Positions 2,969-31,619 of a stretch of 64,000 bases of DNA are shown here, one piece after another (the stretch's first letter is position 1; each line of letters begins with the position of its first letter). Made by a program: the position numbers and the translations under genes. The DNA is from Epithemia pelagica (Eukaryota > Protista > Bacillariophyta), in the NCBI GenBank assembly GCA_946965045.2, contig OX337228.1, positions 930,001 through 994,000 of the forward strand, given 5' to 3'. The notes beneath the pieces were generated by a model that saw only the letters and a program-made list of their open reading frames with translations, was not told where the DNA came from and did no database searches.

Positions 2969-3331
2969 ATGGACTCTCCAGCTCACCAACGTCGTACCAA
3001 ACGATATAAACAGACCACCCCACAGTCGGAAGCGAAATGCTTGTTCCTAGAAGAAGACGATGAGAAGACATTCAACAATGAATGCAAGGCTGCTTCCTCC
3101 CCTTTGTTCCTCAGTCCTCTTGGCACCAAGTTAGTCCTCGACGCTGAAGCGAATGGCAAGCCCATTGATCTTTTGGAAATCAACAAGAAGGTCATTGAGC
3201 ATGACGTCCAACAAATGATAGAAGAGGACAAGAAGGTTCTTACGGACGATAATGATCCTTCCGATCCGAACAAGAAAGATATTGTCGTTGTCCTGCAATT
3301 GTCTCATCCTGATGGCAGATGCTGGAACTGA
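2969..3331 (+). CDS. Acidic 120-aa ORF inside piggyBac, antisense to and overlapping the transposase 3' end
   Basis: ATG in ACCATGG context and charged, protein-like composition. Open in both piggyBac copies; it is 167 aa at 27085-27588 because TGA is replaced by GGA. Confidence 0.4.
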   Translation: MDSPAHQRRTKRYKQTTPQSEAKCLFLEEDDEKTFNNECKAASSPLFLSPLGTKLVLDAEANGKPIDLLEINKKVIEHDVQQMIEEDKKVLTDDNDPSDPNKKDIVVVLQLSHPDGRCWN

Positions 3332-5239
3332 GGAACCACTTGTGGAAGGTGTCCCCCTTTTCCGAGACGACTTCTGAGTCTTCCTGCTTTGTTGATAAAT
3401 ATCTGCATACGGAGTGCAGAGAGAACATGCCAGTTGCCTCTTGAACTCACGGAGTTTCCTGGCCGTAGATAGCTTCTCCACCCCATCTCCTTCTTCGTCA
3501 TTACCTTCTTCTGTGTCGTCTTTTTCTTCGACTTCGATAAGTTTCATCTCCCTAAGCTTCAGGTAGACATTGAATGCATTTAGGATGCAAATATCTTGGA
3601 GAAAGTGCCACACTTGAATCGACAGTACAGTTTCTTTTCGTTTACAGGCGTTGGTAGCTCTCATCTGGTCGGCCCTGTCGACCCCATTCATGAAAAGATT
3701 GTATGCCACAACCGGTGCAGGAGCTCTAAAGGAAGCTCGAATGTGAAGAGAATGACCAACCCAGCGCCACATTGTCGCTAAGCCATGAACCTTTTCAATG
3801 GCTTCCGGATCGTCTTGATATAAGAAGGTCTTGGATGGAGTTCCAAAGAGATCATTAGTGTAAAACACCACTGGCTTTTTATCGAGATATACGATGTAGC
3901 CACAACAATCCGCTGCAATGGCGTATTCCTTTTCGATCTCGATAATGTCCGCTACCTCAAAGCCAACTTTCATTCGAGGGAGAGTCTTGGCATACTCCTT
4001 TGTCTTCTCTTTGGCCTGTTGCTTGCTTCGGTCTGGATGCACAACACCAGTGAAAGCCTTGGCCAATACCCAGGAACCTCGATCTTTATTCTCTAAATAC
4101 TTGATCGCCGTGGTAACATTGTTCTTGTTGATTTTGTCGACCAAGTTCAATCGAACTGTACCAGTTACCTTGATATTCCCATCCGTGTATTTGTCGATCG
4201 CTCGAGCCAGACTGTGTCTGGTATAGAAATTATCCATATAGACAACAGTTTGCGGCATTGATTCCCTCGGCCGTACGGCGTTGGCAGCAATAAGAGCTCG
4301 GTACAAGAGGCCCATCATTAGGACCCATAACATGCTGGCGGAGTCCACGGCCACAGGACAGGCATTGCGAATACGACTTTTGGTGGCTTGACAGAGTTGA
4401 TTGAATGAGGATGTCAACTCTCCAAAGATCTTCAAATATCGCTCAGCCGGAGTTTGACTGGTCATATTACCAGAACCATTGTCAAAAAGGCCGAATGTGT
4501 ATGTATAACTCCACCCAACAACGGCGTAAAAACGAATTGCGAATTTGTCAGGCTTCGACGGTATGTAGGTAGAGGCCCGTGTTTTTGCTTTCGTAGGACA
4601 GCTTGCCTCGTCCAATGCAACCGGACCAACTGGCTGAGCAACGGAACTGAAGTTCCGGAGTATGTGGGACATAGCAGCTCGACAGGTCCACATAGGGTCA
4701 TCTGGATTTCTTGCCATCGACTGTGAATAGATTCGGAGCGATCCTCGGATGGTGACAAATGTATCTCTAGACATGGTAGAAGAGAAGGCAGACGAACCGA
4801 GAAATAATTTGGTGCTCCACAATTCCTTCATTTGAGTTGAGTTACAGAGCGAAAGCGCAATATCCAACCCCAGTACACAGCGAAGAGCCTTTGTAGTAAG
4901 AACAATTTTGGTTCTTTGTCCACTCTGTTTGGCTTCCAAGGCTTCTTTTGTCGCTTTGAAGATGAAACCGTCGATGAATCGTTTGGGGATAAATAGGAAG
5001 AATAATCCCAAAGGACCGGATTCCAAGAAGGCTTGTTGGCATGCCTTGGGATTATGTAGATATAGATCGGCAGAGGCAATTTGGTTGTCGATGTACTGGT
5101 TCTCTCTCTGAGCCGACTTTATATCCCTCAGACGAACCTTACCATCTCGGTGAAGGTTCGTGATGAGGTTGTCATCTTCTTCATTATCATCTTCGTTGTT
5201 GTAATGGAGCTCTCTGGCGACATCAGAGGTGCTCTCCAT
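3131..5239 (-). CDS. piggyBac-family DDD transposase (about 702 aa from the first ATG, MESTSD...)
   Basis: Motifs VALDEAS, KPDKFAIRF, VYMDNFYT, TGTVRLN and YNLFMNGVDRADQ give an intact D-D-D triad. No C-terminal Cys-rich domain is visible. The ORF-track start at 5293 is a GTG. Confidence 0.92.
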   Translation of the reverse strand: MESTSDVARELHYNNEDDNEEDDNLITNLHRDGKVRLRDIKSAQRENQYIDNQIASADLYLHNPKACQQAFLESGPLGLFFLFIPKRFIDGFIFKATKEALEAKQSGQRTKIVLTTKALRCVLGLDIALSLCNSTQMKELWSTKLFLGSSAFSSTMSRDTFVTIRGSLRIYSQSMARNPDDPMWTCRAAMSHILRNFSSVAQPVGPVALDEASCPTKAKTRASTYIPSKPDKFAIRFYAVVGWSYTYTFGLFDNGSGNMTSQTPAERYLKIFGELTSSFNQLCQATKSRIRNACPVAVDSASMLWVLMMGLLYRALIAANAVRPRESMPQTVVYMDNFYTRHSLARAIDKYTDGNIKVTGTVRLNLVDKINKNNVTTAIKYLENKDRGSWVLAKAFTGVVHPDRSKQQAKEKTKEYAKTLPRMKVGFEVADIIEIEKEYAIAADCCGYIVYLDKKPVVFYTNDLFGTPSKTFLYQDDPEAIEKVHGLATMWRWVGHSLHIRASFRAPAPVVAYNLFMNGVDRADQMRATNACKRKETVLSIQVWHFLQDICILNAFNVYLKLREMKLIEVEEKDDTEEGNDEEGDGVEKLSTARKLREFKRQLACSLCTPYADIYQQSRKTQKSSRKRGTPSTSGSSVPASAIRMRQLQDNDNIFLVRIGRIIIVRKNLLVLFYHLLDVMLNDLLVDFQKINGLAIRFSVED

Positions 5240-5431
5240 GGTTGAAAGTACTTTGTAACATGAATGAGGTGCATGTGGTTTTATGAAAAACACATGTAAC
5301 TCGAGAAGTAGGCGCCGGATTGCGGTGGTCCGACCACCAACTGGTAGAACGTACTAAGACGGATGTATGGTGACAAACAGTAGTCCTATAACATGAATGT
5401 CATTGACATATGATTGCTACAAAATCGCAAT

Positions 5432-5723
5432 TTTGGTAAATGGCGATATTGTCATCATTTTTTGAATCACGAGTTGTTGGTCATAACTCACGTGGTAATT
5501 TGTTAATTGGATTGCAATTTTGTTAAGTATTTTTGATGACAAATTTGTCAGTGACCGGGCAAAAAAAGGTGCCGGGCTTTGGTAAATGGCGATATTGTCA
5601 TCATTTTTTGAATCACGAGTTGTTGGTCATAACTCACGTGGTAATTTGTTAATTGGATTGCAATTTTGTTAAGTGTTTTTGATGACAAATTTGTCAGTGA
5701 CCGGGCAAAAAAAGGTGCCGGGC
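5432..5723. repeat. 146-bp tandem duplication in the subterminal region of piggyBac copy 1
   Basis: tttggtaaatggcg...gtgccgggc at 5432-5577 and 5578-5723. It is single in copy 2, which is exactly 146 bp shorter. Confidence 0.92.
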
Positions 5724-5963
5724 TGAAAGGGTTCATGTCATCCGTCTCACTCTCACCCTTCGCTGTCGACTATGCACCAGGAGAGTGGGGTAAACCTGAT
5801 AATATCAGCCCCACTTCATCATAGAAAGGCAGACCGACTATGTTAGCTATTGCTAGGTTAGTAATACGATCAACAGAATAATAGGTAGCTTAAAATATAG
5901 TGTAATCGGTCCCCACCACCACCCGGTTTTTGCAACCGCGACACAAGAACACTTTACAGCTAT

Positions 5964-6976
5964 CTAAAGGGCCACCATTTTGTGGCGCATTCCACCCTCG
6001 AATTTTGCATCCGGTTCGTCTAGGAATACCATCAGTGCACGAAATCCATTGATAGTGTCAAACAAGAACTCGTAGTCAAACTTTGACTGTACTGCAAAAG
6101 GCAAAGAGAGGACAAACTTGGATCTCACAAAATCAGTCTGTTTTTCTTTCAATTGATTGAATGCATCTTCTAGAGCCAATTTCTTACGAATGTTTTCATC
6201 CTTCTCCATCCACTCCTGGGAGAACTGCTTCAACAGTTCTCCCACATCTGTGCTATTGGTAGGCCAAATGATCTTCACAATCAGTTCCTTCTGTGACTCA
6301 CCAACCTCAATGTCGCAATTTGTTGTATCTCTGTGCGCAACCCCAGTGGGCAGGTTGATCACTACAACCACATGCTTTTGTTTGTTCTGATCCACCCACT
6401 GGGTCAGCACATGAGGGGGCGTCCATTCTTTCATCATATCCTTCTTTTCTGACTTCTTTCTCCTGTTTTCCAATGCTCCAAGGTCAGCACCACCGACTGG
6501 AATGGCGACTCCAGACCTTTTTTTCTCTTTTCCTTGTAACAAATTCATAGCTATACTCTTAATTTTATCTGTAGAGAAAGAGAGAAAGAGCAATAGATGA
6601 GAGAACATTAGGTAGGTACCAAGAAGTCGGCAATTTTGATCACGTACCATGACTTACCTGGTGCACCTGGTGCCTTCTTCTTCCCAAACAAACCAGAACC
6701 AGGGGGAAGGTCGTCGTCTGCATCATCCTCAATATCTTCCAATGGATTGAAACTCTCTTCCTTGCTGGTCACCTTGCTGTCCTGCTCCTTTGGGCCATCT
6801 CTCAAATGGTATCCATATTTTTTTTTGAGTTTATTCAATGCAGTACGAAATGATTCAAGCTTGTACTTCTTGAATTGTGGATGATCCGACCACACTTGCT
6901 TTGGTGCAGCGCTTGCTGCAAAGGCACGATTTTTTACCAAGTCTTCCAGGTACTCATCGTCTGCTGTCCTGGAATC
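5964..6976 (-). CDS. Probable Harbinger accessory (second, putatively DNA-binding) gene; exons 6976-6658 and 6568-5964, 5' end unresolved
   Basis: A GTAAGT...ctacAG intron (6657-6569) joins the two track ORFs in frame (...APGAP-D-KIKSIAMN...). Basic helical segment PKQVWSDHPQFKKYKLESFRTALNKLKKKY. It is divergent from the transposase, as expected for two-gene Harbinger elements. Confidence 0.65.
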
Positions 6977-7754
6977 CTAAGAAAGTAAGGGACCTTCACC
7001 AAGGGTGTTCCTACCGGAGCGTGTCATAAGAATTTTGGAATGAACGTTGGGGAGTTTAGTACCTGGGTGGTTTTTTTGGCAAAACCAAACTATGACCAAG
7101 AAAGCATACTGGGTTATTGGTATTCTGGTCTGACCATGATCAGACCGGGTCTGATCCTGATTCTTATAAATGAAGATTTCTCCATGACATTGGCACTTAT
7201 GCCAATACTGAACCAACCTCCTTGTTCCTTATTTAATGAGTTAACTGTGGGTCGGTTAAATATAAGGATTACTTATGTAGGTTGTCTTTGGGTCTGGTGG
7301 TAAAAAAACGACCCAGGTCGTTTTTTCGACCCAGGCAGCTTTTTCATTGGCAGACCAGACGACCTTGTCGATGAGCAATGTTAAGGCTTAAGTTATATCT
7401 AGTTAACTCTTTTTTCAGTGAATAAGAGGGTTGCTTCTCTACTGTTCCTAGAGAGACTTGCGAAAAGTTATTCATGTTTCAATATTGGTCCTCATCACTG
7501 AAACTGATACAGTGGTCTGATCCAAGATCTGACCGGATCAGACCCAAGTGACCCAGAAATAGTGACTGTGACCATTTCTGTACTTAGATTACTCCATGGC
7601 GTTCACGTATAGACAGTCATACATTAAATTCGAACACTACTATAACGAAAATTCTTGATGAACGCAAAGGAATAGTGTTTTGGCATTGGAACTTAGCTTC
7701 ACTGCACGGCATGGGCACCAACATGAATATCGCATAAACTCACAATTCCTGACG

Positions 7755-8675
7755 ATGGAGGTGAATGCAGGAACATTCATTCAAAGTGCTCTTCCTATGA
7801 TGGGGAAGAATAGGAATCCAACAACAAATGAGTTTCATAGAGCTTTTTGAGGCTATTTCAGTCTAACCCCTTCTCTTTGTGTGCATGTGTGGGACGAAAT
7901 AGAGAACCTTCTGCCAAGAGGAGGGAAGCCAGTCCACCTGTTGTGGGGACTTCTTTACCTTAAGGTTTACGCCTCAAAAGATGTCCTGGTGGCAATTGCA
8001 AATACAACAAGAAAGACTTTTAGAAAGTGGAGTAAGATAGTGACAAAGCTGATGGCTCATCTTAACTATGTAAGTACTGGCATGTACCAGTTTGTCAGCA
8101 TTGTATTCTCACCATCTTTGTCCTGTTTTCTTTAGATAAAATGGGAAAATAGATATGATGCAAGAAAAGAAGGACAATGTTGCTTCATTACTTTTGATGG
8201 AACAGACTTTAGAATTTTTGAGCCTGCTCCATTCGACCCTAAGTGGTTTTCCCACAAATTCAAGGGACCTGGGCTGCGTTATGAAATTGGAGTATGCATC
8301 AACACTGGGTGGATTGTGTGGTGGAATGGCCCATACCCTTGTGGGACATGGGCAGACCTCAATATCAGCAGAGATTGGCTCATAGACAAAGTGGATGAAG
8401 GGGAAATGATGGTTGCAGATGGAGGCTACAATGATGGTGGAGAATACTTCATTACACCGTCTGGACACAACAACTTTATGGACAAAATGTTGGCTGATGC
8501 AAGAGCACGACATGAAACAGTCAACAGCTACTTCAAAAGGTACAACATTCTAAAAGACAAATACAGAGGTGACCTTGGATGGCACAATGTGGTTTTTGGG
8601 GCGGTGGTAAATTTGGTCCAGCTTCGTATCGAAAACAACGACCTCGATGTATTCCAAGTCGAAGTAGAAGATTAG
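7755..8675 (+). pseudogene. Harbinger/IS5-like DDE_Tnp_4 transposase; one 66-bp intron (8070-8135) and a premature TGA at 7848-7850
   Basis: The phase-0 GTAAGT...tttAG intron fuses HLLWGLLYLKVY...HLNY to IKWENR...FDGTDFRI...WFSHKFKGPGLRYEIGVC...WNGPYPCG...VADGGY...RARHETVNSYFKRY. The D-D-E residues are present. The upstream frame reads HRAF*GYFSLTP, probably CGA>TGA. Confidence 0.85.
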
Positions 8676-8912
8676 TCTAGCTAGTAGTGCTAAGTGTAGT
8701 GGTCGAAAGACCGGGTGGAGACGAGAATTCTCTTGCCGATGCAGTGGAAACCACGACTGACGTGCGACCAGAACCAGACCCGTGCTGCCGCCAACCGCGG
8801 GGATGTTGATCCTCACACAAAAGTCTGAGAGTGCGTTCATCGATTATCATGAATCATGACGGAAACCCTTCGCTGTCGACGGCGAATGTTGCCGGACTAT
8901 TCGTAGAGGATC

Positions 8913-10814
8913 ATGTCGTTGGATCAAAGAAAGAAAGCCAAAGTCAACCCCGACGCTATGGAAGTTGATTCTGCCGAAGCACCGGAAACGTTGATTTACT
9001 TAAAGGAGTCGAAGGCAACGACGATAGAAGATGGAGAAATTCTAAAGAGGTTGCGCCCCGTTGTTTTTAAGTTGAAACCGTACGACGACACGGCATCGCT
9101 ATGTTCGGACCTGGACAAAATCGACTTTCTAGAGCAATGTTCGTCGATTGCTTCCAAACCGAAGGATGGTATTTTGAAAGATTTGTTCTCAATTTACTCT
9201 GAATCGATGGATCGCGAAGCCGCTAGTATCTTAACGACGGGCGAAGTTGATCGCATCGATCAAAAGGCGGCGATTGAGATTCGCCAGGCGATTTTATTTT
9301 CACAGTTGGTGGACATAGATGATGAGGAGTCAGGAATGAAGGTTTACAACGAGATGGTTCCTGATTTACAGAGTCCTGGATATATGAAATCCCTCGTCAT
9401 CCGCCCCGACGATCAAGAATTTTGGGACCGATGCATCCAGCTCAGTTTGGAGCATCGCCCGGTGTGTGGAGTGGGAAATCCTGGCATTGGAAAAACAATG
9501 ACGACGCTTTATTTGCTGCAGAAACTCCTCATGATACACAAGAAGCCAGTCGTCTATACTATCCGAATGGAATCTGGATTCAGAGATATCTTTTACGAAT
9601 TTGTTCCGGTTGTCGTGAATGGGACAGTCCCCGCTATTACTGTGTCTGTTCACAATATGTTTCACCACGAAATGATCAAAATTGCCAGTATGAAAGTAAG
9701 AGGAGCATTCTTTGTTGTAGATTCAGGAACATATGAGAATTCGTGCGATGTTTCAAGTGAACTCTTTGAAGCGAGATTCATCATGACTGCCGCTAATGAT
9801 AAACGGCACTGGGGTGGCAGCAATTTTACCAAGTTTCGGGAAGCAGATCCTCATCCGATGGAACCCAGACGTCCAAATTCGAAGACAGGTAGACTGGTGT
9901 ATGGTCGTCTTTGGACTGGAAGTCAAGTGCTCAAGGCTAAGCCTTACATCACGCGCTTGCAAGGTGTCGATGACGAGGAATTGTTGCGTCGTTTCAGAAT
10001 AGTGGGAGGATCCATGCGTGATATCATCGCCTTCAAAGAGAAGGAGTTCACACAAAATGTGGAAGTTGCACTGAATCTCGATGCAGACACAGTCAAAGAT
10101 CTTGCAGAGGGAAGATATCAATTTACTTTTGATCAAACGGTACCCTCGAGTATCCTTATCGGACTGGGTCCAGACGATAAAGACCCGACACTATTCAAGA
10201 CAACCCTGAAATCAGACTTTGTAGAAGAAAGGCTTGCCAGCAGGCACCTTAAAATTTCGTGGTATGCAGTGCTTGACAAGGGCGAGGGCAATCGCGGAAA
10301 CCTTTTCGAATCATATCTGCGTTTGAAGTTCTCCTCTGGACCGGTTCTGTTTTCACAAGAGAAAATCCGTGAGAGCCACCGAGAAAAGCCACCTGCAAGT
10401 AAAAGAGAACGAAAGAACTACCAGCCAGTTCCCAATGGGATGACGATTGGATCAGACCGGAATCTTGTGCGAGTGTCGGATATGAATGCGGCTGTGCACG
10501 CAGACCAGACCCAAGTGAACATGTTCTATTCTAAGGATGAGAGTGAGCCTCTGATCGACATGATTTTTCGGGTCGACAACGGGTACGATGCAGTTCAGGC
10601 TACTATTGGTAAGTCTCACGGTGCTGCTACCGCGAAAATAAGAACCTTGAAGGCTGAATTGGGCTTGCAAGACGACGAAAAACTGCGGATCTTTTTCGCA
10701 GTACCGGTGGGTCGCTTTAGGGAGCTTGAAACGGCTCCAGTCAATCCGCTTCTCGATGAGGAAGACCTCAATAATGTGTTTATTTACCACATTGCCGTCT
10801 CCGACATTGAATGA
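8913..10814 (+). CDS. Crinkler/RHS (retrotransposon hot spot)-type protein, 633 aa: P-loop NTPase plus C-terminal PD-(D/E)xK-like nuclease
   Basis: Walker A GNPGIGKT followed by LYLLQKLL, plus FFVVDSG, IMTAAN, RFRIVGGSMR, GNLFESY and C-terminal PLIDMIF...AVQATIGKSH. Single uninterrupted ORF. Confidence 0.75.
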   Translation: MSLDQRKKAKVNPDAMEVDSAEAPETLIYLKESKATTIEDGEILKRLRPVVFKLKPYDDTASLCSDLDKIDFLEQCSSIASKPKDGILKDLFSIYSESMDREAASILTTGEVDRIDQKAAIEIRQAILFSQLVDIDDEESGMKVYNEMVPDLQSPGYMKSLVIRPDDQEFWDRCIQLSLEHRPVCGVGNPGIGKTMTTLYLLQKLLMIHKKPVVYTIRMESGFRDIFYEFVPVVVNGTVPAITVSVHNMFHHEMIKIASMKVRGAFFVVDSGTYENSCDVSSELFEARFIMTAANDKRHWGGSNFTKFREADPHPMEPRRPNSKTGRLVYGRLWTGSQVLKAKPYITRLQGVDDEELLRRFRIVGGSMRDIIAFKEKEFTQNVEVALNLDADTVKDLAEGRYQFTFDQTVPSSILIGLGPDDKDPTLFKTTLKSDFVEERLASRHLKISWYAVLDKGEGNRGNLFESYLRLKFSSGPVLFSQEKIRESHREKPPASKRERKNYQPVPNGMTIGSDRNLVRVSDMNAAVHADQTQVNMFYSKDESEPLIDMIFRVDNGYDAVQATIGKSHGAATAKIRTLKAELGLQDDEKLRIFFAVPVGRFRELETAPVNPLLDEEDLNNVFIYHIAVSDIE

Positions 10815-11637
10815 TCTTCTGCAAGTTGTCGCGGTATTATTCCATGCAAAGTTGCCTTAGGGCTATTATACATTTGAGATGCTTTTCTGGACATCGTTGT
10901 TGTTTGTTATTGCTCCTGCTAGTAGAAAAGGCCAAGATCCATGAGGCCCCGAGGAGGCTGCAGCCGCGTAGGACATTGAAAACGACGAGTTGCCAGAAGC
11001 AGTAGAGAAATAATCTTGTCAGATCGATTGAAGAAAGGCCCAAGTGTTTTATCCTAGTCGATTGTCAAAAATTCCGATTACAACATGTAGATAATCCTAA
11101 AAGGAACGCGTAGAGCACTCCCCAATCGCATGTCCGGGTCATCTACCCATCGACCCGAATGAAACCCGCAAAGGGTAGAGCACCCTTTGCCATCCATGTT
11201 TGATGGGTGGTCCGCCCAAACCGAATGCAAAAGCATTTACCGACTCTGTATTTTATCATGAGGATACTACGAGTATGAGAGTCTGGATCTAGTAGGTCGG
11301 GGATGGGAGGATGTCGTTCTAAATCCAGCAAAAAAGAAGGAAAGCCACGGACATTACTCATATTTACATGGCGTCTTGCTTCTTTTTCACTCGTGACATC
11401 TCCCTAGTCAAACCATAAATAAACTACCATGTAGAGTTTCCTATGGATGATAAAAGTTCCCAAAGTCGTCTTCTGGTGGATGGCGGATACCCGCCACGCC
11501 ATGCAGAGAGTTCGAGACTGTTTTGTCCGCCTCATTCCACAAAATCGCGGGACTAAACAAACATCCACCCTGTACTTTTAGCACAGTCCTCATATTTCTG
11601 TTTAGAAGGAGAAATACAGGACCCGACATTAACAGCA

Positions 11638-13188
11638 ATGTCGAAACAAATCAGAACCAGTCCAGCAAGAGGGGTATCTCTACAGAAGAGAGGGACTACT
11701 GTAGACAGGAGTCGTCACACCCCTGTATGTGGTGGCCCTTTCGGAACAATCGCGATGTTATGGTTCCCTCCGCTCTGGTTGCTATGCTGGATGGTGGTCC
11801 TAACGTGGTGCCTCCTAGAGCTCGTGTTTCTGGAACAACTTCTCGTTCTGGAGCCGTCCAACTTGGTTCCAGAAAAGACTCCATACAACAACAATCAGCA
11901 ACATCCCGAAAGCAGCATAAAAGGCCACACTAGTCGTTTCGTTCCAACCTTATCCGCCGCAAACACTTCTCAACCTCCAACAACAACAACAACAAACACA
12001 CGGGGGGACTATTCACAGCCAGAGTTTGTTCCTACTCATCGTTCCATCCATCTCAAACCTCAAGAAGGTACACAAAGTCGCAACAACACGACAGTCGCCA
12101 CTACCACCATGCACGAAAAATCAAACAGTTCCAACCTTGCGATCGATCATGTCCATGCTACAGAATTTCCATACGCCTTAAGCTGTCCCGGTCAAGTGTT
12201 GCATCCCCGACAGAACAATTACACAATAGTGTTGGGATACCACGTTGGCATGTTGCGTAATTGGCGTTCCATTGTTCAAGATCAATTGCAAACCTTGTAC
12301 CAATGTGGATTGGGACCGGCGCTTTCCGAGTGGTTTGTTTCGTACGCCATGCCACGGCATTTGCAAGAGCATCATCAACCCGAAAAAGAACCAACACGAC
12401 GCCGTCGTCAACGGCTTGTCCAGGAACTGCAAACCTTGTTAATCCCGCCTCCATCAGTACCACAAAGTGTCACACTACCACAACTCTTTGCCAGTACAGG
12501 AATTCCGTGGGAAGGATCCATGTTGAATCAATTGATTCAGTATTGTCAAGAGATCCCACAAGACAAGAAGGCAACCACTCTGGTCTTTTATTGGCACACC
12601 AAGGGTTCCTCCCGATGGCATCAAGATTGGCGTGCCCGTTGGCAAGAACCATATACGTATGGACCCGTCCTGTATTGGCGCAAATATCTGGAATACTTTG
12701 TCCTGGAACGACCAGCCCATTGCATTCATCGCCTGATGCGAGAGGGAGCACAAATTTGTGGAGTAGCACACCAAGCCCAGTCGGGGATCTATGCTGGCAA
12801 TATATGGGCCGCCACATGCTCGTATCTCACACAAATACCCAAGGTGCAAATTCGAACATTCAACCAACCAGTAATGTCCAATCAAACTCACTCCCCCTCC
12901 TCTCAAAGTTACACCGCCGCCAAGTCTTGGGAGAGTGGGTATTTTGATGCGGAACAAGCCTTTGGTATTCCTCAGCGACAAGCAAGGAAGCAACAACAAG
13001 AGCTGCTGAAGCGAAACCATACTCGTCCGAGTAGTAGTAGCAGGAACGATCTTTCCCATATCTTTGTATCATTGCACCAACCCATACAAGCGCAACGACG
13101 AAAGCGACAAGCCGGTTTCTACGCACATGCGTTGAAACCAGAGGAATATCGTTCCGCCATTGCGGATTGGGGACCACTGTCCGTGTAG
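11638..13188 (+). CDS. Type II membrane protein, putative glycosyltransferase-like, 516 aa (start may be the later MLWFPP)
   Basis: N-terminal TM helix (LWLLCWMVVLTWCLLELVFL) and a T/N/Q-rich stem, then YHVGMLRNWRSIVQDQL, FYWHTKG, YWRKYLEYFVLERP and YAGNIWAATCSY. The enzymatic assignment is inference. Confidence 0.7.
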   Translation: MSKQIRTSPARGVSLQKRGTTVDRSRHTPVCGGPFGTIAMLWFPPLWLLCWMVVLTWCLLELVFLEQLLVLEPSNLVPEKTPYNNNQQHPESSIKGHTSRFVPTLSAANTSQPPTTTTTNTRGDYSQPEFVPTHRSIHLKPQEGTQSRNNTTVATTTMHEKSNSSNLAIDHVHATEFPYALSCPGQVLHPRQNNYTIVLGYHVGMLRNWRSIVQDQLQTLYQCGLGPALSEWFVSYAMPRHLQEHHQPEKEPTRRRRQRLVQELQTLLIPPPSVPQSVTLPQLFASTGIPWEGSMLNQLIQYCQEIPQDKKATTLVFYWHTKGSSRWHQDWRARWQEPYTYGPVLYWRKYLEYFVLERPAHCIHRLMREGAQICGVAHQAQSGIYAGNIWAATCSYLTQIPKVQIRTFNQPVMSNQTHSPSSQSYTAAKSWESGYFDAEQAFGIPQRQARKQQQELLKRNHTRPSSSSRNDLSHIFVSLHQPIQAQRRKRQAGFYAHALKPEEYRSAIADWGPLSV

Positions 13189-13524
13189 TAGGAAACAAGG
13201 CCAAGACGGTTTGATCAGGTTTGTTGGCGGATCGTATCGGATAACTAGGCAGATTGGCATCTAGGCAAAGCAAGAGACTTGTAAAAAAATGCTCATGACA
13301 GGGTGTCTTGGTTATAGAGGTTGTTTTGAGAAACATCTACCAATCTCCATGGCATGCAGTGTTCCTGCGCTTCTGATCGATTTGACATTCGAGGAATTTC
13401 TTGTTCTTGTTTCGTTTTACGTCTTCTTTTCTCTCTCTCTCTGTCTCGATGTTTTCGTAAGGGGTGTCACGACCTGTAGGCAAGCTTCATCTTGTTTCCA
13501 TATAGCGTGTCTTCTTGTTCTTTC

Positions 13525-13974
13525 TTAATCTTTGAGTGTATTGATAATGGTCGCCACCACACCTCCAATTCCACCATCGCCCAAATTGGCCAATGCCAGG
13601 AAATTGAGGGCGATCAATCCAAAGCCAATCGCCGTCAAGGTGACCGAGTCGACATCATCGACCAAATCGACACGAACCTTTTGTGGCTCGCCCAAAGGAC
13701 GAGGAGACGGACGATCAAAACCCAAGGATTGAGCTGATGGCGGTTTCGGGTCGTTATCGTCTGGATTGTTGGAGGAAGCCAAGGGTCTACACGACCATGG
13801 CGACTGTTTTGGTTGGGTCAGAGAAGTGCCACCAAATCCAATTTTCCTGGATGGTGTTTTCGATCGGGTCACAGTAAAGGCTTCCACCGATTGAAACGGT
13901 TGATCCAGTGAATGGAACAGAAAGGAAAGCAAGAGGCAAGCAAGCAGGCTTTGAAGAAATGGCCTTATCGTCAT
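13525..13974 (-). CDS. Small plastid-targeted membrane protein of unknown function, 149 aa
   Basis: Signal peptide ending SVEA|FTV (ASAFAP-type), an S/T/R-rich transit peptide, and a C-terminal hydrophobic Gly-rich segment TLTAIGFGLIALNFLALANLGDGGIGGVVA. Confidence 0.8.
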   Translation of the reverse strand: MTIRPFLQSLLACLLLSFLFHSLDQPFQSVEAFTVTRSKTPSRKIGFGGTSLTQPKQSPWSCRPLASSNNPDDNDPKPPSAQSLGFDRPSPRPLGEPQKVRVDLVDDVDSVTLTAIGFGLIALNFLALANLGDGGIGGVVATIINTLKD

Positions 13975-14293
13975 GGTCGTTTGGAAACCAACAGGAGGTG
14001 GGTTTAGCTACACTAATTGCGTTAGACTGTACTCCCTTGTTATGACTACCTATCTTTTCAATACGTATGGAAACCATATAGATAAATCTACGTTCTGGTA
14101 TCAGATAATATCAGGTTTACCCCACACTCCAGATGGCAGCAGCTGCCGTTTGTTCCCCAGAATGGGACCACCGGGTGAGGGGAATGGAGGATTTTCTGTA
14201 GAACCATAACCGACAAATCTGTGTATCCTCTCAGACACGTTCGGTCCGTATGGCCCATATTTTGATCTTTTTGGAGTCTTGACTGTCTTGACA

Positions 14294-14671
14294 ATGCCCC
14301 TGTCCAAAGAATGGATTGCCACCTATACCAGACAATCCGAGCTATGGCGAGTCCTTTGTCTATTGGAACCCTTCAAAGCTCAAGTCGAAGAAGATCCGAA
14401 TGAAGAATCGAGCAGCAGTGACGAATCCATGTTTTCGGGTGTAATGGCCGAGTCCGAGTTGCGACTGCGGTATGGAAAGTTTCGGCTTTTGTATTCGTCC
14501 TTTATCCGTTGCATGCGATATTTGGCTCGAATCAAGGACGATGCTTTGAGTGGACGACAACCGTCCATGATTGACTATGGAACCAGTGGAGCCGAAACCT
14601 CGTCACACAGTCATCGCAACATTTCGTGCAATCAAAATCTTCAAGACTTTTTGGTAGGGCACGAGGTGTAG
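14294..14671 (+). CDS. Hypothetical ORF or gene fragment in region Y (MPLSKEWIATYTRQSELWRVLCLLEPFK...), possibly part of a decayed gene
   Basis: Open in all three units (also 29912-30289 and 45278-45655). Downstream protein-like sequence continues only in other frames. Confidence 0.4.
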   Translation: MPLSKEWIATYTRQSELWRVLCLLEPFKAQVEEDPNEESSSSDESMFSGVMAESELRLRYGKFRLLYSSFIRCMRYLARIKDDALSGRQPSMIDYGTSGAETSSHSHRNISCNQNLQDFLVGHEV

Positions 14672-16080
14672 TGGCACAAAACAACAACAACCAAAATAAT
14701 AGCCCCTCGTGTCAACAGGAGCAACATCTGCAACATCATCCGGACAGTACAGTGGCCATGGAATCCTTTACCGCAACGATCAAGTTCTCCAACAAAGTAC
14801 CGCCGGAACCTTGCGCAGATTACAGTTCACCTTGAGCAGCAGTGAGAACTTGCGGTCTCGATTCTATGCTGCCGTTGCTTCCCAACAACAATTATCGCTT
14901 GAACAAGCACACAACGAAGCTGTGTTACTTCATGAAGAACAAGAACGGCAGCTGCAAAGACAGAATCAAGAAGCTATCCGTGTAAGGCAGGCTGGCAATG
15001 ACTGACGAAAGCGAAGAACGATGAATCTGTCTGCCGCAGCTCGATGGGATCACTCCATGAACCTGAAGGTACGACGGTTGTTATACAGAGCACAAAACAC
15101 TACGAGTTTATATGAAGCAAGGGGATTGTGTTCGTCGATTTAAACGAAGAACTTTCTCGACAAATTACCCTTTGAGCAAGTCGGTCAAAACAATCATTCC
15201 GATACCTCCATTGGAGCAGAGTTACCAGCAACATTTATGAATCACACACATTGATTATGATCGGCAAAAAATGTATTTTAATTTGTTGATTCGTATTCAT
15301 GTTGAGACTGCAGGCGGGAAATCAAGTCATAGCCTCCACGTATGACCTTTCACTGTATAGTACATAGAAATAATTCTATGCAAAGACATAAAAACGTGTA
15401 CTTCTGAGTCAACGCAACGCACTGAAACATCTTCGATAGCACTCATTCGTTGACATTCCGGTAACTCAAAGTATTGGCCGTTTCGTGGACTCCCGTAGTA
15501 CGACGATTATGCCACTATGAACTACCTAGGTAGAGTATATGAAAGCATTACATGGAGTGTGCAAAGGCTAAGTGGGAAATAAATCTCAAAACAGAAACGA
15601 CGTCTCCAACATGAGAATCCAAGTTACGAACATATCAAAGATATCCGTACCATTCATATCAGATTGGTTGACTGCGCCAACGTGGGAACCCCAGTTGCTC
15701 CCATTTGTTTTGTTCGATTTGAATCTTCAAAGGACATTACATTGCCACATCAACTACCTATGTGTATTGTGTACACAGACCATTTAAAATATTATTATGC
15801 ATCTTTTCTGATGAAGATAATACGACTTAAGCAACTGATATTCTTGGTGAATAGGGCGTCTTTTTTCACGCTATCACAGCTACCGTAGCATTCATGAACT
15901 TCTTTTTCTTCTTTTTGCTCTTTGCACTCTTTGCACTCTTTGCACTCTTGGCCGTTTTAGTTTTTAGTCTTTGAAACTTTTCCACTCTTTTCACTCTTTT
16001 CACTCTTTTTACTCTTTTTACTCTTTTCACTCTTTTCACTCTTTTCACTCTTTTTACTCTTTTTACTCTTTTCACTCTTT

Positions 16081-19000
16081 TCACTCTTTCTTCTTACTCT
16101 TCTTACTCTTCTTACTCTTCTTACTCTTCTTACTCTTCTTACTCTTTTTGCTTGTACTACTCTCCGCAGCCGGCGGAACACCAGCGGTGGGTTCGTCACT
16201 TCTTGACGGAGATTGGGTTGGCTGTGTTGTCGGAACGGCAGTCGGAGCGGCCGTAGGGACACTAGTTGGTGCACTTGTTGGAACCAAAGTGGGAGAAGAC
16301 GTTGGGGCCGTAGGACTTCCTGTAGGACTTGACGTTGGGGCTGTTGGATTGGACGTTGGTTGTGCCGTTGGTGCACTTGTCGGCTGTGAAGTGGGGCCGC
16401 TTGTTGGTGCAGCCGTCGGGGCTGTCGTAGGACCGAAGGTTGGTTGACTAGTCGGACCCGCAGTTGGTCCACTTGTAGGTCCACTTGTTGGTGCAGATGT
16501 TGGAGCTGACGTTGGTCCGGCGGTAGGACCAGATGTTGGACCAGATGTGGGTCCATGTGTTGGAGTACTCGTTGGTGATGAAGTTGGCTCGCTGGTCGGC
16601 GACGATGTTGGTCCACTTGTCGGACTGTTTGTTGGTCCACTTGTAGGTCCCGAAGTCGGAGCTGACGTTGGTCCTGCGGTAGGACCAGATGTTGGACCAG
16701 ATGTGGGTTCATCTGTGGGAGTACTCGTAGGTGATGAAGTTGGTTCGCTGGTCGGCGACGATGTTGGTCCACTTGTTGGTCCACTTGTCGGACTGCTTGT
16801 CGGACCACTTGTAGGTCCCGATGTCGGAGCTGACGTTGGGCCGGCGGTCGGGGCAGATGTTGGACCAGATGTGGGTCCATCTGTGGGAGTATTTGTTGGA
16901 GATGAAGTTGGTTCGCTGGTCGGCGATGATGTTGGTCCACTTGTCGGACTGCTTGTCGGACGACTTGTAGGTCCCGATGTCGGAGCTGACGTTGGTCCGT
17001 CGGTAGGACCAGATGTTGGACCAGATGTGGGTTCATCTGTGGGAGTACTCGTTGGTGATGAAGTTGGTTCGCTGGTCGGCGACGATGTTGGTCCACTTGT
17101 TGGTCCACTTGTCGGACTGCTTGTCGGACTGCTTGTCGGACCACTTGTAGGTCCCGATGTCGGAGCTGACGTTGGGCCGGCGGTCGGGGCAGATGTTGGA
17201 CCAGATGTGGGTTCATCTGTGGGAGTACTCGTTGGTGATGAAGTTGGCTCGCTGGTCGGCGACGATGTTGGTCCACTTGTTGGTCCACTTGTCGGACTGC
17301 TTGTTGGTCCACTTGTAGGTCCCGATGTCGGAGCTGACGTTGGGCCGGCGGTCGGGGCAGATGTTGGACCAGATGTGGGTTCATCTGTTGGAGTACTCGT
17401 TGGTGATGAAGTTGGCTCGCTGGTCGGCGACGATGTTGGCAATGATGTTGGTGCACTTGTCGGACTGCTTGTTGGTCCACTTGTAGGTGACGAAGTCTTT
17501 GGAACTTTTCCACTCTTTTCACTCTTTTCACTCTTTTCACTCTTTTCACTCTTTTCACTCTTTTTGCTTGTACTACTCTCCGCAGCCGGCGGAACACCAG
17601 GGGTGGGTTCGTCAGTACTACTTGACGGAGATTGGGTTGACTGTGTTGTCGGAACGGCAGTCGGAGCGGCCGTAGGGTTACTCTTCTTACTCTTCTTACT
17701 CTTCTTACTCTTTTTGCTTGTACTACTCTCCGCAGTCGGCGGAACACCAGGGGTGGGTTCGTCAGTACTACTTGACGGAGATTGGGTTGGCTCTGTTGTC
17801 GGAACGGCAGTCGGAGCGGCCGTAGGGACACTAGTTGGTCCACTTGTTGGTGCACTCGTTGGTTGACTTGTGGGTGTCGATGTTGGAGCAGACGTTGGGC
17901 CATCAGTCGGAGCAGATGTGGGACCATCAGTCGGTTGGGTTGTCGGAGCGGATGTTGGGCCATCTGTGGGAGCAGATGTGGGACTTGTAGTAGGCTCTGT
18001 TGTCGGAGCTGATGTGGGAGCAGATGTGGGACCAGCGGTTGGTTCTGATGTCGGAGCGGATGTTGGGCCGGCTGTCGGAGCTGATGTGGGACCATCAGTT
18101 GGTTCTGCTGTTGGAGTACTCGTTGGGGTTTCCGTAGGCTCACTGGTCGGCAACGATGTTGGTGATGACGTTGGTGCACTTGTCGGACTGCTCGTCGGAT
18201 TTTCAGTCGGCTCAGTTGTAGGACCACTCGTAGGTGAGCTCGTTGGTTGACTGGTTGGTGTTGATGTGGGAGCGTTCGTCGGGCCGTCTGTGGGACTTGC
18301 AGTGGGATTGTCAGTGGGATTGTCAGTTGGCTGTGATGTGGGAGTACTCGTGGGTGTTTCAGTGGGCTCACTGGTAGGGGTGGACGTAGGTTGACTGGTC
18401 GGAGGTGTGGTGGGACCGACCGTGGGTTGATTAGTGGGATTGTTCGTGGGCGCAGATGTCGGGGTCGATGTGGGATTGTCGGTAGGTCCACTTGTTGGTG
18501 CAGATGTTGGTCCGGCGGTAGGACCAGATGTTGGACCAGATGTGGGTCCATCTGTTGGAGTACTCGTTGGTGATGAAGTTGGCTCGCTGGTCGGCGACGA
18601 TGTTGGTCCACTTGTTGGTCCACTTGTCGGACTGCTTGTTGGTCCACTTGTTGGTGCACTCGTTGGTTGACTTGTGGGTTTCCTGTGGGAAAAGACGTTT
18701 CCTGTGGGAGAAGACGTTGGGGCTGTAGGACTTCCTGTAGGACTTGACGTTGGGGCTGTTGGATTGGACGTTGGTTGTGCCGTTGGTGCACTTGTTGGCT
18801 GTGAAGTCGGGCTGCTTGTTGGTCCCGCAGTCGGAGCTGTCGTCGGACCATTCGTTGGTGCACTTGTGGGCGCTGAGGTAGGACTGTTTGTTGGTGTCGC
18901 CGTCGGAGCTGTAGTTGGACCTGCTGTTGGCTGACTTGTCGGACCCGCAGTTGGTGCACTTGTTGGTGCACTCGTTGGTTGACTTGTGGGTGTCGATGTT

Positions 19001-22000
19001 GGAGCAGACGTTGGGCCATCAGTCGGAGCAGATGTGGGACCATGAGTCGGTTGGGTTGTCGGAGCGGATGTTGGGCCATCTGTGGGAGCAGATGTGGGAC
19101 TTGCAGTAGGCTCTGTTGTCGGAGCTGATGTGGGAGCAGATGTGGGACCAGCGGTTGGTTCTGATGTCGGAGCGGATGTTGGGCCGGCTGTCGGAGCTGA
19201 TGTGGGACCATCAGTTGGTTCTGCTGTTGGAGTACTCGTTGGGGTTTCCGTAGGCTCACTGGTCGGCAACGATGTTGGTGATGACGTTGGTGCACTTGTC
19301 GGACTGCTCGTCGGATTTTCAGTCGGCTCAGTTGTAGGACCACTCGTAGGTGAGCTCGTTGGTTGACTGGTTGGTGTTGATGTGGGAGCGTTCGTCGGGC
19401 CGTCTGTGGGACTTGCAGTGGGATTGTCAGTGGGATTGTCAGTTGGCTGTGATGTGGGAGTACTCGTGGGTGTTTCAGTGGGCTCACTGGTAGGGGTGGA
19501 CGTAGGTTGACTGGTCGGAGGTGTGGTGGGACCGGCCGTGGGTTGATTAGTGGGATTGTTCGTGGGCGCAGATGTCGGGGTCGATGTGGGATTGTCGGTA
19601 GGTCCACTTGTTGGTGCAGATGTTGGTCCGGCGGTAGGACCAGATGTTGGACCAGATGTGGGTCCATCTGTTGGAGTACTCGTTGGTGATGAAGTTGGCT
19701 CGCTGGTCGGCGACGATGTTGGTCCACTTGTTGGTCCACTTGTCGGACTGCTTGTTGGTCCACTTGTAGGTCCCGATGTCGGAGCTGACGTTGGGCCGGC
19801 TGTCGGTGCTGACGTAGGGGCTGTTGGGCTTCCTGTGGGAGAAGACGTTGGGGCTGTAGGACTTCCTGTAGGACTTGACGTTGGGGCTGTTGGATTGGAC
19901 GTTGGTTGTGCCGTTGGTGCACTTGTTGGCTGTGAAGTCGGGCTGCTTGTTGGTCCCGCAGTCGGAGCTGTCGTCGGACCATTCGTTGGTGCACTTGTGG
20001 GCGCTGAGGTAGGACTGTTTGTTGGTGTCGCCGTCGGAGCTGTAGTTGGACCTGCTGTTGGCTGACTTGTCGGACCCGCAGTTGGTGCACTTGTTGGTGC
20101 ACTCGTTGGTTGACTTGTGGGTGTCGATGTTGGAGCAGACGTTGGGCCATCAGTCGGAGCAGATGTGGGACCATCAGTCGGTTGGGTTGTCGGAGCGGAT
20201 GTTGGGCCATCTGTGGGAGCAGATGTGGGACTTGTAGTAGGCTCTGTTGTCGGAGCTGATGTGGGAGCAGATGTGGGACCAGCGGTTGGTTCTGATGTCG
20301 GAGCGGATGTTGGGCCGGCTGTCGGAGCTGATGTGGGACCATCAGTTGGTTCTGCTGTTGGAGTACTCGTTGGGGTTTCCGTAGGCTCACTGGTCGGCAA
20401 CGATGTTGGTGATGACGTCGGTGCACTTGTCGGACTGCTCGTCGGATTTTCAGTCGGCTCAGTTGTAGGACCACTCGTAGGTGAGCTCGTTGGTTGACTG
20501 GTTGGTGTTGATGTGGGAGCGTTCGTCGGGCCGTCTGTGGGACTTGCAGTGGGATTGTCAGTGGGATTGTCAGTTGGCTGTGATGTGGGAGTACTCGTGG
20601 GTGTTTCAGTGGGCTCACTGGTAGGGGTGGACGTAGGTTGACTGGTCGGAGGTGTGGTGGGACCGGCCGTGGGTTGATTAGTGGGATTGTTCGTGGGCGC
20701 AGATGTCGGGGTCGATGTGGGATTGTCGGTAGGTCCACTTGTTGGTGCAGATGTTGGTCCGGCGGTAGGACCAGATGTTGGACCAGATGTGGGTCCATCT
20801 GTTGGAGTACTCGTTGGTGATGAAGTTGGCTCGCTGGTCGGCGACGATGTTGGTCCACTTGTTGGTCCACTTGTCGGACTGCTTGTTGGTCCACTTGTAG
20901 GTCCCGATGTCGGAGCTGACGTTGGGCCGGCTGTCGGTGCTGACGTAGGGGCTGTTGGGCTTCCTGTGGGAGAAGACGTTGGGGCTGTAGGACTTCCTGT
21001 AGGACTTGACGTTGGGGCTGTTGGATTGGACGTTGGTTGTGCCGTTGGTGCACTTGTTGGCTGTGAAGTCGGGCTGCTTGTTGGTCCCGCAGTCGGAGCT
21101 GTCGTCGGACCATTCGTTGGTGCACTTGTGGGCGCTGAGGTAGGACTGTTTGTTGGTGTCGCCGTCGGAGCTGTAGTGGGACCTGCTGTTGGCTGACTTG
21201 TCGGACCCGCAGTTGGTGCACTTGTTGGTGCACTCGTTGGTTGACTTGTGGGTGTCGATGTTGGAGCAGACGTTGGGCCATCAGTCGGAGCAGATGTGGG
21301 ACCATGAGTCGGTTGGGTTGTCGGAGCGGATGTTGGGCCATCTGTGGGAGCAGATGTGGGACTTGTAGTAGGCTCTGTTGTCGGAGCTGATGTGGGAGCA
21401 GATGTGGGACCAGCGGTTGGTTCTGATGTCGGAGCGGATGTTGGGCCGGCTGTCGGAGCTGATGTGGGACCATCAGTTGGTTCTGCTGTTGGAGTACTCG
21501 TTGGGGTTTCCGTAGGCTCACTGGTCGGCAACGATGTTGGTGATGACGTTGGTGCACTTGTCGGACTGCTCGTCGGATTTTCAGTCGGCTCAGTTGTAGG
21601 ACCACTCGTAGGTGAGCTCGTTGGTTGACTGGTTGGTGTTGATGTGGGAGCGTTCGTCGGGCCGTCTGTGGGACTTGCAGTGGGATTGTCAGTGGGATTG
21701 TCAGTTGGCTGTGATGTGGGAGTACTCGTGGGTGTTTCAGTGGGCTCACTGGTAGGGGTGGACGTAGGTTGACTGGTCGGAGGTGTGGTGGGACCGGCCG
21801 TGGGTTGATTAGTGGGATTGTTCGTGGGCGCAGATGTCGGGGTCGATGTGGGATTGTCGGTTGGTGCGTCCGTGGGCTGACTTGTGGGACTGCTGGCCGG
21901 ATCATTGAGTCGTCGGCGGGAAACACCCGATCGCAAATGCCCCCCGACATCGGTCGAGTCGGTGTTTTCTCGGTCGTCATCGTACGGAACGCGTTTGGAA

Positions 22001-29701: not shown

Positions 29702-31619
29702 TCAATGTCATCCGTCTCACTCTCACCCTTCGCTGTCGACTATGCACCAGATGGCAGCAGCTGCCGTTTGTTCCCCAGAATGGGACCACCGGGTGAGGGG
29801 AATGGAGAATTTTCTGTAGAACCATAACCGACAAATCTGTGTATCCTCTCAGACACGTTCGGTCCGTATGGCCCATATTTTGATCTTTTTGGAGTCTTGA
29901 CTGTCTTGACAATGCCCCTGTCCAAAGAATGGATTGCCACCTATACCAGACAATCCGAGCTATGGCGAGTCCTTTGTCTATTGGAACCCTTCAAAGCTCA
30001 AGTCGAAGAAGATCCGAATGAAGAATCGAGCAGCAGTGACGAATCCATGTTTTCGGGTGTAATGGCCGAGTCCGAGTTGCGACTGCGGTATGGAAAGTTT
30101 CGGCTTTTGTATTCGTCCTTTATCCGTTGCATGCGATATTTGGCTCGAATCAAGGACGATGCTTTGAGTGGACGACAACCGTCCATGATTGACTATGGAA
30201 CCAGTGGAGCCGAAACCTCGTCACACAGTCATCGCAACATTTCGTGCAATCAAAATCTTCAAGACTTTTTGGTAGGGCACGAGGTGTAGTGGCACAAAAC
30301 AACAACAACCAAAATAATAGCCCCTCGTGTCAACAGGAGCAACATCTGCAACATCATCCGGACAGTACAGTGGCCATGGAATCCTTTACCGCAACGATCA
30401 AGTTCTCCAACAAAGTACCGCCGGAACCTTGCGCAGATTACAGTTCACCTTGAGCAGCAGTGAGAACTTGCGGTCTCGATTCTATGCTGCCGTTGCTTCC
30501 CAACAACAATTATCGCTTGAACAAGCACACAACGAAGCTGTGTTACTTCATGAAGAACAAGAACGGCAGCTGCAAAGACAGAATCAAGAAGCTATCCGTG
30601 TAAGGCAGGCTGGCAATGACTGACGAAAGCGAAGAACGATGAATCTGTCTGCCGCAGCTCGATGGGATCACTCCATGAACCTGAAGGTACGACGGTTGTT
30701 ATACAGAGCACAAAACACTACGAGTTTATATGAAGCAAGGGGATTGTGTTCGTCGATTTAAACGAAGAACTTTCTCGACAAATTACCCTTTGAGCAAGTC
30801 GGTCAAAACAATCATTCCGATACCTCCATTGGAGCAGAGTTACCAGCAACATTTATGAATCACACACATTGATTATGATCGGCAAAAAATGTATTTTAAT
30901 TTGTTGATTCGTATTTATGTTGAGACTGCAGGCGGGAAATCAAGTCATAGCCTCCACGTATGACCTTTCACTGTATAGTACATAGAAATAATTCTATGCA
31001 AAGACATAAAAGAGAATACTTCTGGGACGCACAGAAACATATTCGATAGCACTTATTCGTTGACATTCCGGTAACTCAAAGTATTGGCCGTTTCGTGAAC
31101 TCCCGTAGTACAACGATTATGCCCCTATGAACTACCTAGAGTATAAGAAAGCATTTCATGGAATGTGCAAAGGCTGAGTGGGAAATAAATCTCAAAACAG
31201 AAACGACGTCTCCAACATGAGAATCCAAGTTACGAACATATCAAAGATATCCGTACCACACATATCAGATTGGTTGACTGCGCCAACGTGGGAACCCCAG
31301 TTGCTCCCATTTGTTTTGTTCGATTTGAATATTCAAAGGACATTACATTGCCACATCAACTACCTATGTGTATTGTGTACACAGACCATTTAAAATATTA
31401 TTATGCATCTTTTCTGATGAAGATAATACGACTAAAGCAACTGATATTCTTGGTGAATAGGGCGTCTTTTTTCACGCTATCACAGCTACCGTAGCATTCA
31501 TGAACTTCTTTTTCTTCTTTTTGCTCTTTGCACTCTTTGCACTCTTTGCACTCTTTGCACTCTTTTCACTCTTTTTACTCTTTTCACTCTTTTCACTCTT
31601 TGTACTCTTTTCACTCTTT

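Follow-up and report, generated by a model that had tools for sequence, protein, structure and literature searches.

Can a transposon of a diatom carry whole host genes from one place in the genome to another? This question is raised by a window of 64,000 nucleotides from Epithemia pelagica (assembly GCA_946965045.2, contig OX337228.1, positions 930,001 to 994,000), which represents contig ctg1332l and in which all positions are given here unless another locus is named. An earlier note on this DNA had described an insertion of 8,349 bp (5781-14129) as a PIF/Harbinger transposon that ferries three genes. The analysis reported here points to a different history. Host DNA was probably captured once, guided by microhomology, into a Harbinger copy (transduplication), and mobility of the resulting composite together with its cargo is unproven. 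The element in the window appears to be an old, now disabled copy of a multi-copy 3.1-kb Harbinger-type element.

The borders of the insertion can be read directly from the sequence and by comparison with two sister units in the window. A CAG target site duplication (TSD) stands at 5778-5780 and 14130-14132, immediately outside terminal inverted repeats (TIRs) of 28 bp (left, 5781-5808, plus strand; right, 14102-14129) that are imperfect and match at 25 of 28 positions. The flanks at 4800-5780 and 14130-15500 align without a break to 28916-31110, and the same holds for 45067-46157 with the final 50 bp of the left flank (5731-5780) plus 14130-15173, in both cases with 97-99% identity. Both pairs of flanks meet at one CAG, located at 29748-29750 in sister unit 2 and at 45114-45116 in sister unit 3, so that 29710-29790 and 45076-45156 run through both flanks with a single copy of the triplet. 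The sister units belong to a segmental duplication that is large (~17 kb) and, since their sites are empty, the insertion is younger than this duplication; that both units lost an insertion by precise excision would be a less parsimonious explanation. The empty sites date the insertion but do not distinguish between an arrival of 3.1 kb and one of 8.35 kb. A search with a 17-nt core of the TIR, allowing up to three mismatches, gave no third occurrence in the window (shuffled sequences yielded a mean of 0.12 matches). In these respects, namely length, 28-bp TIRs, CAG duplication, precise empty sites in two sister units and lack of an internal TIR copy, the description given in the earlier note was accurate.

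What the element looks like without cargo was deduced from its relatives. Loci were sampled via identical or near-identical partner proteins, and all copy numbers, which derive from protein clusters and from the loci of the sampled proteins, are lower bounds. On this basis the family occupies at least 13 distinct insertion sites. The 228-aa partner open reading frame (ORF; minus strand, 5964-6650) has at least 20 cluster members at 90% identity or more, all from assembly ERZ21939226, and a second subfamily at 60% identity comprises 42 members. Most copies measure 3,082-3,092 bp, the canonical ones 3,086-3,092 bp; most are ~99% identical to one another and end in the same TIRs as the window copy, the left TIR being that of the canonical copies L006-L008. 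The TSDs of ten family copies (seven CAG/CTG, two CCG/CGG and one mismatched pair) define the target as CNG, mostly CWG. None of the 12 other sampled sites carries the window cargo. Nine of them hold intact-length 3.1-kb copies, one has a deleted right TIR (L003/L019) and two contain ordinary nested transposable elements (on ctg1258l and in L021). A scan of JGI metagenome contigs for the TIR returned one 23-nt match without further similarity, which was judged to be due to chance.

Comparison with the canonical copies, to which the window copy is 97.4-97.7% identical, delimits the cargo to the base. The Harbinger-type core of 2,940 bp (5781-8720) corresponds to positions 1-2960 of canonical 3,086-bp copies, and the last 132 bp of the element including the right TIR (13998-14129) correspond to their right end. 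The canonical base equivalent to 8720 is directly followed by that equivalent to 13998 (...CGGGTGGAG|GTGGGTTTAGC at canonical position 2960); hence, 8721-13997 is an insertion into the element. It measures 5,277 bp instead of the ~5.4 kb estimated previously; the stop codon of the transposase gene precedes it by 45 bp, and another 132 bp of the element follow it. Beyond 4 bp, no canonical element sequence is missing or duplicated around it. The insertion falls exactly in a subterminal inverted motif, CCCACC-N-CCACCCGG, which is found ~135 bp from each end (canonical 131-147 and 2950-2966; ~5911-5927 and 8711-8720 / 13998-14003 in the window, the right copy being G-rich on the top strand), and the right motif is split by the cargo. 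That the motif acts as a protein-binding site or promotes fork stalling is a speculation from its sequence and position.

The origin of the cargo could be traced to a second locus of the same assembly. Window 8712-13997 matches positions 9093-14878 of locus L002 on ctg1261l with 98.65% DNA identity, the captured segment proper corresponding to L002 9102-14878, and the three cargo ORFs are found there in the same order and orientation. A donor locus, which the earlier note had proposed to look for, is thus available. The neighbouring ORFs in L002 are host-like (aminotransferase class V, patatin and zf-CCCH), and no Harbinger sequence is present in the 21.7 kb that make up this locus. Proteins at least 90% identical to each cargo protein occur only on two or all three of ctg1332l, ctg1250l and ctg1261l; the cluster of the DUF8361 protein has no member on ctg1250l, where the gene is frameshifted. 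A compositional contrast was observed as well. The observed/expected ratio of CpG, 0.45 for the Harbinger core, changes abruptly to 0.94 precisely where the cargo begins, and values of 0.85-0.96 were obtained for the flanks. This pattern fits a long-resident, probably methylated transposon that received recently imported, normal host DNA.

Both capture junctions show short stretches of similarity. At the left junction (8711-8720, plus strand) the canonical motif CCGGGTGGAG ends; seven of nine positions agree between CGGGTGGAG, with which the canonical element terminates, and CGGATGAAG, which stands in the donor flank directly beyond the copied stretch. At the right junction (13994-13997, plus strand) there are 4 bp of microhomology, GGAG: the donor-derived tract closes with ...CAGGAG, and ...GTGGAG stands in the canonical element directly ahead of the point where its sequence resumes. 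The segment is bordered by GGAG/GGAG in the window and by GAAG/GGAG in L002. Terminal inverted or direct repeats (TIRs or long terminal repeats, LTRs) were not found on the cargo tract, its ORFs contain no recognised mobility-protein domain, and there is no clean TSD of its own at the capture junctions. The left junction pattern had no match in the JGI metagenome contigs.

A second contig provides an independent view of the structure and its later decay. Locus L004 (ctg1250l), which is either the other haplotype or a very recent paralog, is collinear with the window from position 1 to ~19,000 at 98.5-99.2% identity; the insertion, its flanks, the capture junctions and the nonsense codon in the transposase gene all recur there. 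In a three-way comparison over 5,255 aligned bp, 36 substitutions separate the donor from both element copies, 12 are private to the window and 19 to L004. This pattern argues for a single capture before the two element copies split. The cargo of L004 is decaying. Its gene 1 has a 23-bp insertion and a 1-bp deletion, gene 2 a 19-bp deletion and gene 3 a changed start region; the donor gene 1 on ctg1261l suffered a 1-bp deletion near codon 87 and has a ~480-bp miniature inverted-repeat transposable element (MITE) upstream. Since gene 1 is broken in both, the window contains the only intact copy of this paralog in the accessible data. The ratio of non-synonymous to synonymous substitution rates, 0.54 between cargo and donor (p = 0.07), does not suffice to infer constraint.

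Nested insertions were observed at several of these loci. The donor MITE (L002 9211-9693) has TIRs (ends GCCATTCCTTTAGCTC...), an apparent 5-bp CTGAG duplication and is absent from both element copies. A 1,292-bp element is nested near the right cargo end of L004 (15083-16364), on ctg1250l only; its TIRs of ~20 bp (TACCCCC...GGGGGTA) and 10-bp duplication (GGAAACCAAC) are Mutator-like in style. On ctg1340l, a 790-bp MITE with a TAA duplication (L021 7332-8121) is nested in a family copy 19 bp to the right of the point where the window carries its cargo. The TIR of this MITE includes the 10-mer CCGGGTGGAG, which is also present in the Harbinger subterminal motif where the cargo joins; a shared binding motif or chance may account for this. 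The copy on ctg1258l (L005 5350-6870, L012 5866-7444) is split, with an 8-bp overlap, by a 6.15-kb insertion that encodes a 1,417-aa ORF without Pfam match and is probably another transposable element.

From these data the following course of events is proposed. A member of a PIF/Harbinger-type family with a two-exon DDE_Tnp_4-like transposase gene and a divergent partner gene sits in one unit of the segmental duplication. Into this element, 5,277 bp of ordinary host DNA would have been copied from the ctg1261l locus without loss of transposon sequence. The growing strand would leave the element at ...GGAG, prime on the look-alike host sequence, copy 5.3 kb and return at GGAG, the setting being gap repair after excision or microhomology-mediated replication. 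Template switching appears the most likely process, since the junctions display microhomology and the tract has neither ends nor a TSD of its own. Copying from ctg1261l into the element is the favoured direction, because no third locus is present in the accessible data and the right microhomology is better in this direction (4 bp versus 2). Once formed, the composite could move only with proteins supplied by intact sibling copies.

Several points weigh against this account. The template-switch step is inferred from junction anatomy only, and the direction of copying, which is deduced from parsimony and the right microhomology, is not proven. The junctions are known from assembled contigs alone and, with copy counts taken from protein clusters and sampled loci, a degraded second composite could have been missed. 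Furthermore, the two loci have similar left flanks (CGGRTGRAG) and the segment lies between two G[G/A]AG borders, a pattern that a target-specific mobile unit could also produce. The 5.3-kb segment would in that case be an independent mobile element, for example one associated with its Crinkler/RHS-like gene, that entered the Harbinger copy and the ctg1261l locus in separate events. The sharp boundaries that the two copies have in common, a gene 1 that belongs to a multi-copy family and borders that could be read as a 4-bp duplication (GGAG/GGAG in the window and GAAG/GGAG in L002) next to similar left flanks are all compatible with such a unit; however, the putative duplication in L002 is imperfect and the segment is known from two loci only. 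It is devoid of TIRs, LTRs and termini of the Helitron type and lacks genes for a transposase, integrase, reverse transcriptase or Rep protein, its other two genes look like ordinary host genes, and the gene 1 paralogs and homologs elsewhere are not linked to DUF8361 genes at the loci examined. An independent element is therefore considered very improbable. A chimeric join of a Harbinger copy and a ctg1261l segment during assembly, which the dependence on assembled contigs would permit, is more improbable still: ctg1332l and ctg1250l share both junctions and yet differ by 31 private substitutions and private indels, and the cargo differs from ctg1261l by 48 substitutions, the MITE, here measured at 483 bp, and indels. 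A second contig with identical junctions and its own later mutations argues against an assembly chimera and thus against the misassembly that the earlier note had named as a possible refutation.

The alternative closest to the earlier note is gene ferrying, in which the cargo was acquired elsewhere and the whole 8.35-kb composite was moved to this site by a sibling transposase and can still be mobilised. This scenario benefits from several observations: both TIRs of the composite are identical to those of apparently active canonical copies, these copies, with open transposase and partner frames and ~99% mutual identity, seem to have been active recently, the empty sister units show the insertion to be younger than the duplication, and cut-and-paste transposition would leave no copy at the earlier site. 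Yet no second composite site was found; the cargo protein clusters are confined to two or three of three contigs, the 12 other sampled sites are free of cargo and the junction pattern is absent from the JGI metagenome contigs. Moreover, the cargo splits the right subterminal motif, and capture in place, which gap-repair models predict, explains the same data without an extra step. Ferrying is thus regarded as distinctly unlikely. Movement of the composite since the capture has left no sign among the protein clusters and sampled sites, the cargo form being confined to one site and the collinear contig. It is unlikely, too, that the composite is still mobilisable by intact siblings, in which case diatom Harbinger-type elements could relocate blocks of several complete genes. 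A macro-transposon, in which two elements bracket the genes, was rejected, as there is no internal TIR and the canonical sequence is continuous across the cargo site.

Seen against this background, the earlier note was right that the genes are captured, since a cargo-free canonical element and a host-derived parental locus were both found, while its mobile cargo family is not supported. Other TIR-bounded copies, which it had proposed to look for, do exist with CAG, CTG, CCG or CGG duplications, but none of those sampled carries the window cargo; with the cargo form at one site and its collinear contig and the 12 other sites cargo-free, the claim that the element moves genes is not upheld. Neither is the statement that the whole 8,349 bp behaved as one insertion, since the cargo could have been added at this site to a 3.1-kb element that had arrived earlier. 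A macro-transposon, which the note had considered, is at odds with canonical sequence that runs uninterrupted on either side of the cargo and with the lack of internal ends.

The element is placed in the Harbinger class by its transposase, its TSD and its TIRs. The transposase gene (7755-8675, plus strand) consists of exon 1 (7755-8069), a GT...AG intron (8070-8135) and exon 2 (8136-8675). A Pfam search with all element and cargo ORFs of the window returned no significant match, and exon 2 alone gave none at threshold. Exon 2 has 3,038 homologs in a library of 1.84 billion proteins, among them P0089, P0099, P0169 and P0187 (E 1e-31 to 1e-44), which pass the gathering score of Pfam DDE_Tnp_4 in the aligned region. 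As these homologs pass over the same region, the window transposase is assigned to the DDE_Tnp_4 type, and the motifs D (FDGTD), D (ADGGY) and E (ARHE) are visible in its sequence. By transitive homology it appears to be a divergent PIF/Harbinger-type DDE transposase. A 3-bp TSD and short TIRs common to the family copies are likewise PIF/Harbinger features, and the classification in the earlier note as a PIF/Harbinger-type element with a 3-bp CWG-type duplication is borne out by the DDE_Tnp_4 homologs and the family TSDs.

The partner (accessory) gene at 5964-7027 is divergent in orientation from the transposase gene (minus strand) and has two exons, with the ATG of exon 1 at 7027-7025 and an exon 2 ORF that extends to 5964; canonical exon 1 begins with MTRSGRN. 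The partner protein has no Pfam match. Its matches by Atlas language-model features are all to Myb/SANT/MADF families with low scores (0.62-0.64), and a single-sequence structure model of its exon 1 (predicted local distance difference test, pLDDT, 54) contains three helices but is of too low quality to be used; a Myb/SANT-like identity is a weak lead. The divergent pair described previously in the left part of the insertion is therefore present, but in the window copy both genes are interrupted by nonsense codons. The transposase has a premature TGA at 7848-7850, shared with L004, in place of CGA (Arg) in canonical copies, and the partner gene has a premature TAG at 6979-6977 that is specific to the window, canonical copies and L004 reading Trp. 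Owing to these two codons, the window copy is non-autonomous. In canonical copies both frames are open at the nonsense positions. The sibling copies look intact and young, and their open frames and ~99% identity suggest recent activity of the family.

The right part of the insertion contains three complete ORFs of 633, 516 and 149 aa, as described before. Cargo gene 1 (8913-10814, plus strand) encodes a 633-aa P-loop nucleoside triphosphatase of a diatom-wide family, whose relative on ctg1261l is 98% identical at the protein level. Full-length relatives with 45-57% identity were found in diatom transcriptomes (Attheya septentrionalis, MMETSP) and on many metagenomic contigs, and the Walker A motif GxxGxGKT is invariant. 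The protein appears Crinkler/RHS-like by language-model features, with Atlas scores of 0.95-0.98 to Crinkler and trypanosome RHS clusters; in Pfam it has weak nSTAND3/AAA matches only, and a PDB profile search with the family gave weak ClpB/Hsp104 P-loop matches only. Two gene 1 homologs, a paralog in the same genome (L009 6269-9521) and a metagenomic one (L010 2516-5981), were observed head-to-head with an unannotated gene of ~485-500 aa. The two genes may form a conserved module.

Cargo gene 2 (11638-13188, plus strand) codes for a 516-aa protein that carries DUF8361 in a precomputed Pfam annotation and has diatom relatives of at most 43% identity. An alignment-based structure model (pLDDT 70) predicts a transmembrane helix, a disordered stalk and a globular, GT-A-like domain. 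Its weak PDB matches are all GT-A-type glycosyl- or nucleotidyl-transferases, by which the protein may be glycosyltransferase-like. Cargo gene 3 (13525-13974, minus strand) encodes a protein of 149 aa whose N-terminal signal peptide is followed by an A-F motif and, at the C-terminus, by a hydrophobic helix; according to the ASAFAP rule of diatoms it would be targeted to the plastid. Its promoter was probably not copied, because only 23 bp of donor sequence precede the ATG.

The surroundings of the insertion are rich in duplications. The segmental-duplication units span 813-24930, 24931-~42000, 42488-~46157 and 53256-62441 and are 97-99% alike. They contain very long repeat-built ORFs (e.g. 15957-22446, >2,000 aa) with tandem repeats of ~156/168 bp and ~1.1 kb, which resemble mucin-like or cell-wall proteins. 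A 146-bp segment is tandemly duplicated with 99% identity at 5432-5724, at a distance of 57 bp to the left of the insertion site; this doubling is confined to the window copy, and sister unit 2 and L004 have the segment once. This tandem repeat had been tried as the pair of sister units and was rejected, for a composite of the two flanks fails to match it. A 720-aa ORF of the piggyBac type (DDE_Tnp_1_7), which every unit of the segmental duplication contains, lies at 3131-5293 on the minus strand in unit 1 and recurs at 28267-29409 (minus strand) in unit 2, where it is shortened, and at 4342-6501 in L004, which like unit 1 has it intact. It may represent a piggyBac transposase gene that was domesticated or recently duplicated. 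Rfam and transfer RNA scans of positions 5000-15000 gave no match.

The locus constitutes an unusually complete case of gene capture: it comes with the cargo-free family, the parental locus, both junctions resolved to the base, a further haplotype or paralog and a record of how each copy decayed. It suggests that, in a stramenopile alga, one copying event mediated by microhomology suffices to bring three whole genes between transposon ends that look functional; of the captured genes, gene 1 is intact only inside the transposon. Two questions can be addressed at this locus, namely the mobility of such composites and the continued use of captured genes. If the composite were mobilisable, transposon capture would be a route for gene relocation and turnover in diatom genomes; as long as neither mobility nor expression is demonstrated, the practical importance stays modest.

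Gene capture by cut-and-paste transposons has been documented mostly in plants, and mostly as gene fragments in non-autonomous elements. Fungal Starships, medaka Teratorn and cargo-bearing Mavericks are large families that move cargo repeatedly with other enzymes. The composite in the window shares with them intact genes inside mobile-element boundaries and differs from them in its small cargo, its unique event and its unproven movement. Zebrafish Harbinger3_DR reportedly generates a CWG duplication. PIF/Harbinger elements of this kind have in common with the present family the CWG-centred 3-bp TSD, short TIRs, a DDE_Tnp_4-type transposase and a second gene, whereas the transposase described here is short (~285 aa) and too divergent to pass Pfam alone, its partner has no Myb/SANT match above noise and the TSD is CNG, not strictly CWG.

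The closest counterparts are Pack-type PIF/Harbinger elements of maize and rice, which are non-autonomous and carry gene pieces (PMC8903248); since these have been described, the kind is already known. As in Pack-MULE, Pack-CACTA and Pack-PIF elements, host coding DNA lies inside a DNA transposon bounded by TIRs and TSDs, and a separate parental locus exists (PMC8903248). In contrast to Pack-type elements, the full two-gene element is kept here, the transposase gene being mutated by a nonsense codon rather than absent, and a single 5.3-kb block of cargo contains three coding sequences, each complete. The composite is present as a single copy, without amplification or same-cargo copies at other sites among the protein clusters and sampled loci, the host is a diatom and the junctions appear to be of the template-switch type. 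For Pack-CACTA and Pack-PIF, a route has been proposed in which elements insert in tandem and are then remobilised (PMC8903248); it does not fit this locus, as the canonical sequence is unbroken on both sides of the cargo. A literature search turned up no report of transduplication or cargo DNA transposons in diatoms, which is no proof of absence.

With regard to the process, parallels are found outside this group. Abortive gap repair and template switching yield internally rearranged Ac/Ds or P elements with filler DNA, and microhomology-mediated break-induced replication is a related source of such structures. The composite of Epithemia pelagica resembles these products in its microhomology of few bases, its ectopic insert, the lack of element loss and the lack of a TSD. 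It differs from the Ac/Ds and P products in the extent of the copied tract, which is long (5.3 kb) and comprises whole genes.

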